A DNA stretch of 64,000 nucleotides, taken from positions 1 through 64,000 of IMG/VR virus record IMGVR_UViG_3300045971_000344; one strand, written 5' to 3'. The stretch's first letter is position 1, and every line of letters starts with the position of its first letter. This document shows positions 12,566-14,065 of the stretch, piece after piece. The translations under genes were made by a program, and so were the position numbers. The notes under the pieces are model-generated. The model was not told the DNA's origin. It was given only the letters and a program-made list of their open reading frames with translations, and did not search any database.

Positions 12566-14065
12566 ATGGCAAAAGAAAGTTCTGGTGGTAGCGGGTTTAG
12601 CAGACTCAAACCTAAGGTTGGGGGTGACAGAGAAAATCTTAGAGTGGACAAACTTATGGAGGTATGTAAATTCAAACCTAACAAGTGGGTCACCGTTAGA
12701 TTTTTGCCTTCCTTTGTTTTACCCGTAGTAAACGTTTGGTTTAAGGGTTCTAACAAAGAAGGAAAGGCAGTAAACTTTGCAAAGCTCGCAACAAACTTTG
12801 ACCCGTACTCAGATGATTTTATTAGCGACCAGACCTGTCCTTATATTGATGCTGATGGACGGCCTGCAAAAGAGTACTGGGCTAATGCTATTGTTAGAAC
12901 GGAGCAAGAGAACGAGCCCAAGAAAAAGGGTTCAATGAGTAAAGCAGAAAAGAAGAGCGGCTTTAAAGAAAAGGATAGTGATGCATGGACACCTGTACAG
13001 GCCGTACGCTTGGTTTCTTCTTTGGCTGATAAAATCAAAAAGATTACAGCATTGAATGAAGTCAAGAATAAAAAGACTGGTGAAAAAGAAGTTTACGATA
13101 TCTCTGATGCTAAATACGGTTGTGATATTAATATCATGTACTGTCCAGACGAGAAGAATCCAGGTAATATGTATCAACTCCAAAAGGGTGACCGTACACC
13201 GTTAACCGATGAAGAGCTTGAGTATTTGACATATGATCTGGAAGGCTTGATTCCTGTAATCTTTGGTGCTGACGCAAAAGAGCGTAAAGAAAAGATTAAG
13301 GAAGCAAAACTTGAGGTCCAGCGTATGAAGGTAATTGATAAAGATGGCGAAGACGATGAAGATGATGAAGATGATATCGACTTGTCTAAGAAAAAGAAAA
13401 ATAAGAATAAAAAATCTAAAAAAGACGAAGATGATGAAGACGATGAGCCAAAGAGTAAAAAGGGTAAAAAGGAAGACCCAAAGAAAAAGAAAAAGCCAGT
13501 AGATGATGATGATGAAGACGATGAAGATGATGATGAAGATGATGATGATGAGCCAAAGAGTAAGAAAGGCAAAGCCTCATCTAAGAAATCAAAGCACGAA
13601 GATGATGATGATGATGATGAAGATGATGATGATGATGAAGACGAAGACGAAGACGAAGATGATGATGATGATGATGATGATGATGATGATGATGATGATG
13701 ACGATGATGACGATGATGATGATGATGATGATGACGATGATGACGATGATGATGATGATGATGAGCCAAAGAGTAAGAAAGGCAAGTCTTCTAAAAAAGA
13801 GGAACCCAAGAGCAAAAAGGGCAAAGCCCCTTCTAAGAAATCTAAAAAAGACGATGATGAAGATGATGATGAAGATGACGAGCCCAAGAGTAAGAAGGGT
13901 AAAAGTAAGAAGGTCGATCTAGACGACTTAGATGAAGATGAGGACGATGACGAGCCCAAGAGCAAAAAGGGCAAGTCTTCTAAGAAATCTAAAAAAGATG
14001 ATGATGATGAAGACGAAGATGATGAGCCCAAGGCTAAAAAGAAGAAAAAGAAAGCAATGTTCTAA
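12566..14065 (+). CDS. gp32-like single-stranded DNA-binding protein with ~250-aa Asp/Lys low-complexity tail
   Basis: VTVRFLP...CPY...ANAIVR...YGCDINI...YQLQKGDRTPLT resembles phage gp32-type SSBs; position in the replication module; acidic tail. Confidence 0.6.
   Translation: MAKESSGGSGFSRLKPKVGGDRENLRVDKLMEVCKFKPNKWVTVRFLPSFVLPVVNVWFKGSNKEGKAVNFAKLATNFDPYSDDFISDQTCPYIDADGRPAKEYWANAIVRTEQENEPKKKGSMSKAEKKSGFKEKDSDAWTPVQAVRLVSSLADKIKKITALNEVKNKKTGEKEVYDISDAKYGCDINIMYCPDEKNPGNMYQLQKGDRTPLTDEELEYLTYDLEGLIPVIFGADAKERKEKIKEAKLEVQRMKVIDKDGEDDEDDEDDIDLSKKKKNKNKKSKKDEDDEDDEPKSKKGKKEDPKKKKKPVDDDDEDDEDDDEDDDDEPKSKKGKASSKKSKHEDDDDDDEDDDDDEDEDEDEDDDDDDDDDDDDDDDDDDDDDDDDDDDDDDDDDDDEPKSKKGKSSKKEEPKSKKGKAPSKKSKKDDDEDDDEDDEPKSKKGKSKKVDLDDLDEDEDDDEPKSKKGKSSKKSKKDDDDEDEDDEPKAKKKKKKAMF
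13500..13765 (+). repeat. (GAT/GAC)n trinucleotide tract encoding poly-Asp
   Basis: Directly visible long GAT runs. Confidence 0.95.

Follow-up and report, generated by a model that had tools for sequence, protein, structure and literature searches.

What does a phage protein that binds single-stranded DNA (an SSB) do with a long disordered tail in which acidic runs alternate with blocks of lysine? This question is raised by a gene in the first 64 kb of the IMG/VR virus record IMGVR_UViG_3300045971_000344, which is 294,944 bp in length and is rated complete by CheckV. We refer to these 64,000 nucleotides as the window; coordinates are those of the window unless another record is named, and genetic code 11 is used throughout. 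The answer that we arrive at is that the tail is most likely the A-domain of gp32, enlarged about five-fold into a block polyampholyte, i.e. a self-complementary electrostatic tail. The family of this SSB has been annotated before and the fold of its core is a known one. What seems to be new here is the block-polyampholyte tail with a conserved grammar, which is apparently undescribed in the literature that we searched.

Evidence for a gp32-type SSB

The protein is predicted to have the three-part plan of T4 gp32 (PMC11551737), with an N-terminal arm that is short and disordered, a core with an OB-fold and a disordered C-terminal domain. The gene and its parts are listed below; the structural assignments use AlphaFold2 (AF2) models and their predicted local distance difference test scores (pLDDT).

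12566-14065, plus strand: the SSB gene (P0001), stop codon included, 499 residues, from the open reading frame (ORF) list and its translation; PHROG 15004
12566-12640, plus strand: disordered N-terminal arm, residues 1-25, with an F-x-x-L-K-P-K-x-G-G motif (AF2 pLDDT 34-37)
12641-13336, plus strand: gp32-type OB-fold core, residues 26-257, with a terminal helix at 237-257, from AF2 and fold searches
13337-14062, plus strand: disordered block-polyampholyte tail, residues 258-499 (242 residues), in which 7 acidic blocks alternate with 9 lysine blocks

The 257 N-terminal residues are the part of the protein that matches PHROG 15004, 'single strand DNA binding protein', the family to which the SSBs of jumbo phages of the PaBG/phiRSL1 type belong; the E-value is 8.4e-74 with the whole protein and 6.4e-61 with residues 1-260. 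A tblastn search with the core found 95 phage records at 33-38% identity, and nearly all of those listed are jumbo phages. The matches include PaBG, phiRSL1, the Erwinia phage Yoloswag and SNUABM phages, the Dickeya JA phages, BcepSauron and Vibrio GR11A, and the records annotated as SSB include PaBG, phiRSL1, Yoloswag and Motura. The closest relative found is just 41-43% identical to the window SSB, and a megablast of 11000-16000 against phages gave no match.

There was no Pfam match for the protein, including the gp32 family PF08804 and PF00436, and neither sequence (phmmer) nor profile searches of the PDB matched a solved structure. The resemblance to gp32 is seen in the predicted fold. AF2 models the core with a pLDDT of 92-98 from a 34-sequence alignment, and with this model Foldseek retrieves RB69 gp32 (E 9e-7) and T4 gp32 (E 3e-6), both with a probability of 1.0. 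In an exhaustive VIA-align search the best match is T4 gp32 (8gme_B, Z 10.1, 192 aligned residues), followed by RB69 gp32 (2atq_B, Z 8.9, rmsd 3.6), and the runner-up fold after gp32 reaches a Z of only 4.1. An hhalign alignment with T4 gp32, weak at a probability of 7%, places VTVRFLPS on AVIRFLPS and YWANAIVR on YWANILVV, and also sets a CPY of the window SSB on the CPVC of the T4 gp32 zinc site.

We found no other SSB (PF00436 or PF08804) in the 295-kb genome, and this gene is the sole recognisable ssDNA-binding protein gene of the phage. Based upon the PHROG 15004 match, the gp32 fold, the aligned RFLPS and YWAN motifs, the lack of another SSB and the replication genes in the neighbourhood, we can say with high confidence that the gene encodes a gp32-type SSB.

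The core has a net charge of +3. The N-terminal arm (net charge +2) carries a semi-conserved LKPK-x-GG and no LAST motif; a similar motif, [FL]G-x-[LV/F]-[KQ]P[KR]-x-G, is found in the homologues P0003, P0004, P0007, PaBG and others. By analogy, the arm is a possible counterpart of the gp32 B domain, which is responsible for cooperativity (PMC11551737).

A disordered tail of alternating charge blocks

The start of the tail (residue 258, nucleotide 13337) was set by the AF2 model together with the composition. Its 242 residues comprise 100 D, 62 K, 29 E, 19 S and 10 P, giving a net charge of -67. Eight of the nine basic blocks start with P-K. One acidic block is far longer than the rest, the other six being of 8-17 residues each. 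The main elements are as follows:

13598-13765, plus strand: run of 56 consecutive D/E as assembled, residues 345-400, an imperfect (GAT)n array
13445-13468, plus strand: EPKSKKGK unit 1, residues 294-301
13550-13573, plus strand: EPKSKKGK unit 2, residues 329-336
13763-13786, plus strand: EPKSKKGK unit 3, residues 400-407
13802-13825, plus strand: EPKSKKGK unit 4, residues 413-420
13880-13903, plus strand: EPKSKKGK unit 5, residues 439-446
13952-13975, plus strand: EPKSKKGK unit 6, residues 463-470
14024-14062, plus strand: variant unit EPKAKKKK (residue 487) and the basic C-terminus ...KKKKKKAMF
13805-14041, plus strand: degenerate 72-nt (24-residue) tandem repeat, 3.2 copies

By Uversky charge-hydropathy analysis the tail is well past the boundary towards disorder, and AF2 gives it a pLDDT of 38-52 and no secondary structure. 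The charges are strongly segregated: the charge-patterning parameter kappa is 0.61-0.66, compared with 0.16 +/- 0.03 in shuffles of the same residues (z 17-20). Work by Das and Pappu in 2013 and by Lin and Chan in 2016 is said to show that blocky charge patterns favour the compaction or intermolecular association of intrinsically disordered regions (IDRs). The tail has what is looked for in the sequence of a condensate scaffold, namely a long IDR with multivalent, self-complementary blocky charge.

A preliminary description of this DNA, made from the letters alone, had proposed an SSB-like protein with a block-charged disordered tail of about 250 residues, one run of about 55 consecutive D/E and six EPKSKKGK units. 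The analyses above bear out the SSB-like identity, the disorder and the charge patterning. The run was counted at 56, and the units at exactly six, with the single variant EPKAKKKK in addition. The tail is long as described, although its exact length is 242 residues. The span given for it, 13290-14065, is the 3' half of the ORF and does contain the tail, but it also takes in the final part of the last core helix.

A tail shared by the whole family surveyed

We surveyed 9 metagenomic homologues, 4 cultured-phage proteins and 47 IMG/VR loci. The tail statistics below cover the 52 distinct metagenomic and IMG/VR sequences (n = 52).

Tail length: 104-307 residues, median 208
Tail kappa: 0.34-0.83, median 0.60
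Tail z against shuffles: 5.6-24, median 15
Tail net charge per residue: -0.54 to +0.13, median -0.21

A block-charged tail was found in every homologue surveyed, i.e. in 52/52 distinct sequences as well as in the cultured phages PaBG, phiRSL1, Yoloswag and GR11A, and therefore it is a trait of the family and not a peculiarity of the window phage. The preliminary description also held that the acidic tails of gp32 and other SSBs are short. That is correct for T4 (47 residues), but not for the PHROG 15004 family. The window tail itself is the 21st longest and its kappa is ordinary. It is typical of the family except for its unusually long acid run: the longest run has a family median of 11.5 residues, and the 56 of the window protein are second only to 99 in one homologue. 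The latter (P0012, at L052:3602-5008 in IMGVR_UViG_3300031631_000006) has the longest unbroken D/E run of the family, and this homologue also carries an additional helical K/E-rich insert preceding the tail.

These comparisons bear on the idea, put forward in the preliminary description, that the tail may be a DNA mimic. As a decoy of this type, poly-Asp would imitate the DNA backbone and titrate DNA-binding proteins of the host (e.g. nucleoid proteins, restriction enzymes or sensors that serve its defence), much as the Ocr-type anti-restriction proteins do. The 56-residue run and the net charge of -67 would suit such a role, and so would the 99-residue run of the homologue above and the 70-residue D/E run at the end of a second protein of the window phage (P0011, described below). 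However, acidity is not conserved, with tails of up to +0.13 per residue and a typical longest acid run of about a dozen residues, whereas conservation is seen in the block pattern, and this weakens the case for a pure DNA mimic. Furthermore, lysine blocks are always present and would neutralise a mimic, and fusion to a replicative SSB suggests a role at the fork. Known DNA mimics of the Ocr/ArdA type display their carboxylates on a rigid, folded surface that matches the geometry of DNA, unlike this tail, which is predicted to be fully disordered. We regard DNA mimicry as very improbable.

The C-terminal ends of the tails are of several types:

D-rich [IVL]PF, resembling the tip of E. coli SSB: 5/52 homologues
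Acidic, the last six residues including an aromatic one: 17/52 homologues
Acidic only: 6/52 homologues
Basic, including the KKKKKKAMF of the window SSB: 20/52 homologues
Other: 4/52 homologues

The D-rich [IVL]PF ends (e.g. ...DDDIPF) belong to L006, L013, L030, L036 and P0004. Their sequence suggests that some phages of this family may dock host SSB-interacting proteins through such tips. Because the ends vary across the family, tip-mediated docking cannot be the common function of the tail.

The core shows variation as well. A gp32-like C...CxxC zinc arrangement (C ... CPYC) is found in around 18 of the 52 homologues, including PaBG and Yoloswag, and some of these have a nearby His. Cys91 (12830-12850, residues 89-95, ..TCPYID..) is the only zinc ligand that the window SSB retains. 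Since this arrangement is kept by some and has been lost by the window SSB and many others, the family appears to split into zinc and zinc-less forms.

Evidence for selection on the tail pattern

How did such a tail arise, and is it maintained? The DNA shows that the tail expands through GAT slippage and tandem duplication. Growth by duplication is evident from the 72-nt repeat (Tandem Repeats Finder (TRF) score 211, 67% matches), since each copy encodes one basic unit and one acidic block. Within the acid run, TRF reports a period of 3 at 13601-13764 with 54.7 copies and 88% matches. The longest pure (GAT) run is of 14 units, and the longest exactly repeated word, of 53 nt, recurs within the acid run at an offset of 33 nt. 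GAT accounts for 80/100 of the Asp codons in the tail, compared with 12/19 in the core. Two further ORFs overlap this region, one coding for poly-Ser on the minus strand (13174-14031) and one for poly-Met on the plus strand (13503-13922). Both are unsupported frame artefacts of the GAT/AAG repeats, and we do not consider them to be genes.

A tract of this kind might be little more than tolerated junk, a near-neutral low-complexity expansion by slippage and tandem duplication of a protein end that needs only to be acidic, as in T4. The imperfect (GAT)n microsatellite, the 72-nt repeat and the biased use of GAT are what one would see in that case, as are the three-fold variation in tail length, the lineage-specific repeat units and the quick build-up of insertions and deletions (indels). 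Yet no tail among the 52 homologues is shorter than 104 residues, all of them show significant charge segregation, and a tail that is merely acidic would not need lysine blocks.

Two further observations are difficult to reconcile with junk. The first is the placement of proline. A Pro occurs within the first two residues of 183/205 acid-to-basic transitions (89%), in 49/50 proteins, while Pro accounts for only 10% of the tail residues that are not acidic. The basic-to-acid junctions favour V, R, K or S instead. Slippage would not be expected to produce a preference that depends on direction in this way. The second is the conservation of the repeated peptide. The six EPKSKKGK units differ at 7 nucleotide sites, all of which are third codon positions and all synonymous (P = 2.3e-5 from the positions alone). 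As the differences are only synonymous, the copies must be old enough to have diverged, with the peptide held constant. Had the units been duplicated recently or undergone gene conversion, their DNA would be uniform too, and therefore the differences between units speak for purifying selection. Taking both sides into account, we find the junk explanation improbable.

What is preserved across the family is a grammar. The repeat unit differs by lineage, and EPKSKKGK is private to that of the window. When close pairs are compared, the tails have changed more quickly than the cores, chiefly through indels. P0009 and P0010, for instance, agree at 265/266 core positions, while their tails are separated by 13 substitutions and 9 gap columns. 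This rapid turnover coexists with a preserved grammar, and so the sequences argue for selection on tail architecture rather than on exact sequence. In our judgement the tail is probably functional and selected for its pattern.

Repetitive DNA also raises the concern that the 56-residue run was expanded or collapsed in the assembly. With a 53-nt word repeated at a 33-nt offset and a pure (GAT)14, short k-mers could misjudge the length, and searching viral contigs and metagenome contigs for an exact 31-nt pattern adjacent to the run gave no match, and thus no independent assembly. On the other hand, a second JGI contig (293,540 bp, compared with 294,944 bp) encodes the same 499-residue product from a coding sequence that is 100% identical at the nucleotide level, and GAC, GAA and GAG interruptions serve as anchors inside the run. 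Independent genomes, finished cultured phages among them, have tails of similar size, one of which includes the 99-residue run. An artefact of tract length is, in our view, quite unlikely. Errors with a period of 3 would leave the reading frame intact, and the conclusion for the family is unaffected even if the length of this run is wrong.

A proposed function for the tail

We now return to the tail as an enlarged gp32 A-domain. The explanation that we favour overall, with more confidence than doubt, is that it regulates DNA binding, recruits partners and clusters SSB-coated DNA. In gp32, partners such as Dda are recruited through the C-terminal region, the acidic end of which is thought to fill the ssDNA site when no DNA is bound (PMC11551737). 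Dda and UvsX are both known partners of gp32 in T4 (PMC11551737), and the window encodes a Dda-like and a UvsX-like protein. In E. coli SSB, the disordered linker and the acidic tip serve cooperativity, partner binding and condensation (PMC7584906, PMC10018359). More generally, blocky charge patterns drive the condensation and selective partitioning of IDRs (PMC12518536).

The mechanism that we propose has several steps. The acidic blocks would compete with ssDNA for the basic cleft, giving an auto-inhibition that is relieved upon cooperative binding, as for gp32, T7 gp2.5 and E. coli SSB. They might also give replisome and recombination proteins a surface on which to dock. Between them, the P-K lysine blocks would make the tail self-complementary and multivalent. 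When SSBs are aligned on ssDNA, their tails could then pair acid-to-base between molecules, with DNA or with basic partners, and bridging of this kind would strengthen long-range cooperativity. As a result, SSB-coated DNA and enzymes might be gathered in a dense replication/recombination focus, which is possibly a condensate.

Our confidence in the parts of this proposal differs. That the tail serves as a hub for regulation and recruitment, with electrostatic clustering between molecules, seems to us about evenly balanced. Condensate formation by the window SSB is plausible and would fit the charge patterning, but a true liquid-like compartment in vivo is doubtful. A still bolder idea is that the '(D/E)n - Pro - Lys block' grammar lets the SSBs of jumbo phages that do not form a nucleus (PaBG/phiRSL1-like) build a membrane-less and shell-less replication/recombination compartment on ssDNA, in convergence with the eukaryotic nucleolar proteins that combine D/E tracts with K-blocks. 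This we offer as a speculation that is rather unlikely to be correct as a whole.

The absence of a nucleus is part of that idea. In a low-sensitivity test, tblastn of phiKZ gp54, gp55, gp71 and gp74 against the 295-kb genome gave best E-values of 0.35-1.4. With no match to chimallin or to the phiKZ-type RNA polymerase, there is no sign of a protein-shelled nucleus in the window phage. It encodes a sigma factor and no multisubunit phage RNA polymerase was detected, a combination that departs from the traits of the Chimalliviridae.

Several points weigh against the function that we favour. With a net charge of -67 the tail is a strongly net-negative chain, which self-coacervates poorly without polycations or basic partners, and condensation would therefore need counter-ions or basic partners. 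The net charge per residue varies so much in the family that no single electrostatic mechanism need fit all members. The C-terminus of the window SSB is basic, and is not an acidic or aromatic docking tip in the style of gp2.5 or E. coli SSB. The binding of ssDNA by the window SSB is itself deduced from fold and family. Finally, our literature search found no description of a PHROG 15004-type tail and no experiment on any member of the family.

The acidic runs may also have consequences during translation. DE/P motifs, which are D/E runs that can also be interrupted by Pro, destabilise translating E. coli ribosomes, and an internal motif is for the most part silenced when the exit tunnel holds a nascent chain of at least 30 residues (10.1101/2021.02.02.429294). 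Inside the 56-residue run, it is poly-Asp itself that would occupy the tunnel. The DE/P motifs of the tail could therefore give rise to truncated isoforms that are sensitive to Mg2+ and carry tails of graded length.

Genome context

Nearly all genes of the window are carried by the plus strand. The SSB gene is a member of the replication/recombination module of a jumbo phage of about 295 kb, which includes the following:

5944-7161, plus strand: DnaB-like helicase
9078-10067, plus strand: DnaG-type primase
10048-11055, plus strand: Cas4-like PD-(D/E)XK nuclease
11485-12507, plus strand: phage sigma factor, directly upstream of the SSB gene (Pfam Sigma70_r2; phrog_17569, E 1.4e-53)
12551-12556, plus strand: Shine-Dalgarno-like AAAGGA, 9 nt 5' of the SSB ATG, read from the sequence
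14856-15479: DnaJ-domain protein, between the SSB and recombinase genes
21679-23298, plus strand: UvsX/RecA-like recombinase
24040-25080, plus strand: SbcD-like protein
25901-27076, plus strand: clamp loader
27083-29443, plus strand: SbcC-like protein
29443-30984, plus strand: Dda-like helicase

The sigma factor and SSB genes are separated by a gap of 58 nt. Because there is no sigma-70-like promoter in this gap, the two are likely to be co-transcribed; a scan for promoters and terminators around the SSB gene found nothing exceeding the expectation from shuffles. The order of sigma factor and then SSB is also seen in PaBG, Yoloswag and GR11A. In PaBG and Yoloswag a RecA/UvsX-like gene comes next, in GR11A one small ORF separates SSB from recA, and in phiRSL1 the recombinase likewise comes after the SSB. 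In the window the recombinase gene is 7.6 kb downstream of the SSB gene, with DnaJ-domain and glycosyltransferase-like genes in between. Elsewhere, the window contains a transposase-like ORF (47385-48956, plus strand; phrog_10081, E 1e-29) and a sole tRNA gene, tRNA-Leu(TAA) (54186-54272, plus strand).

A second block-charged protein and two ORFs at 32-36 kb

The only proteins of the 295-kb genome with D/E runs of more than 9 residues are the SSB and P0011. Two ORFs without a PHROG match lie at 32-36 kb, where the GC content is 0.47-0.49 as opposed to 0.35-0.40 in the flanks:

52207-53154, plus strand: P0011, 315 residues
32135-33055, plus strand: P0013, five blocks rich in V, A and E, with an [AET]PK[RK]xRK basic unit after each (e.g. 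APKRTRKA or TPKRGRKA)
33167-34603, plus strand: P0014, with an N-terminal CxxC...CxxC and a long A/K/E-rich region

The 80 N-terminal residues of P0011 are K/A/E-rich and resemble histone H1, the middle is globular-looking, and two acid runs, of 13 and 70 consecutive D/E, are found in the C-terminus. These runs are separated by the basic unit EKPKRGRKPGKPV, which follows an 'acid-P-K...PV-acid' grammar as in the SSB tail. The only family match of P0011 is to phrog_22271 (function unknown, E 2.6e-9); there was no Pfam match, no phage tblastn match and no homologue in a word search. In all, repeated Pro-Lys/Arg units are present in three proteins of the window phage.

Could the SSB tail be chromatin-like? 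Here the H1/SPKK-like P-K-x-K-K blocks would bind and compact duplex phage DNA, or the acidic blocks would chaperone basic proteins, as in nucleolin, nucleoplasmin and the HMGB1 tail. The P-K start of 8/9 basic blocks is in keeping with this, as are the H1-like AKKPAAK-type repeats of homologues and the Pro-Lys/Arg units of P0011 and P0013. This is, however, a resemblance to eukaryotic proteins, and no homology was found. A larger acidic block stands beside each basic block and should outcompete DNA in cis, no basic partner was identified, and P0011 is without detectable relatives that could inform this reading. The related suggestion in the preliminary description, of a histone-like chaperone, was drawn from resemblance and appears to fit the family data less well. 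We think a chromatin-like role distinctly unlikely, and retain the enlarged A-domain as the preferred explanation.

Why the tail matters

The tails of SSBs govern the recruitment of enzymes in replication, recombination and repair, and in the case of E. coli SSB condensation as well. Here a whole family of phage gp32-type SSBs has swapped the short acidic tail for a block polyampholyte of 100-300 residues with a conserved grammar. The family occurs in cultured, tractable phages, e.g. PaBG, phiRSL1 and the Erwinia and Dickeya jumbo phages. This natural series of tails, which differ in length, net charge and tip, could be used to relate charge patterning to the cooperativity, auto-inhibition and clustering of SSBs. 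It could also show whether jumbo phages without a protein nucleus organise their replication by condensation.

Comparison with known systems

Some parallels are eukaryotic. In the nucleolin N-terminus, Nopp140, the HMGB1 acidic tail and the charge blocks of the MED1 IDR, long acidic tracts likewise alternate with Pro/Lys-rich basic blocks, within a disordered region beside a module that binds nucleic acids. Condensation and selective partitioning are driven there by blocky patterns of charge (PMC12518536). There is no homology with these proteins, which come from another domain of life, and the likeness is a lead towards convergence only.

The SSB of E. coli follows the same logic, with a DNA-binding core and a long disordered tail that serves cooperativity, recruitment and condensation (PMC7584906, PMC10018359). 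It differs in fold class and oligomeric logic, as it is an OB-fold tetramer with a DDDIPF tip, whereas the window SSB does not match PF00436 and ends in KKKKKKAMF. The E. coli linker is rich in Gly, Gln and Pro and nearly uncharged; it is not a block polyampholyte.

The SSBs of PHROG 15004, e.g. PaBG gp117, phiRSL1 ORF222, Yoloswag gp238 and that of GR11A, belong to the same family, with 33-38% identity in the core and Pro-initiated basic blocks in the tail. The window SSB gene differs in that no recombinase gene directly follows it and in its private EPKSKKGK unit.

Finally, the gp32 proteins of T4 and RB69 share the core fold (Z 10.1 and 8.9), the RFLPS and YWAN motifs, and the plan of N-terminal arm, core and acidic disordered C-terminal domain. 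As in T4, the gene sits among those of Dda-like, UvsX-like, primase, helicase and clamp-loader proteins. Unlike T4 gp32, the window SSB lacks a PF08804, PDB sequence or profile match, and has lost the zinc ligands (His64, Cys77, Cys87 and Cys90 in T4) bar Cys91. The tails differ the most: that of T4 has 47 residues, of which 15 are D/E and 2 are K/R, and its acid runs never exceed 3 residues, whereas that of the window SSB has 242 residues, with 62 lysines and nine basic blocks.

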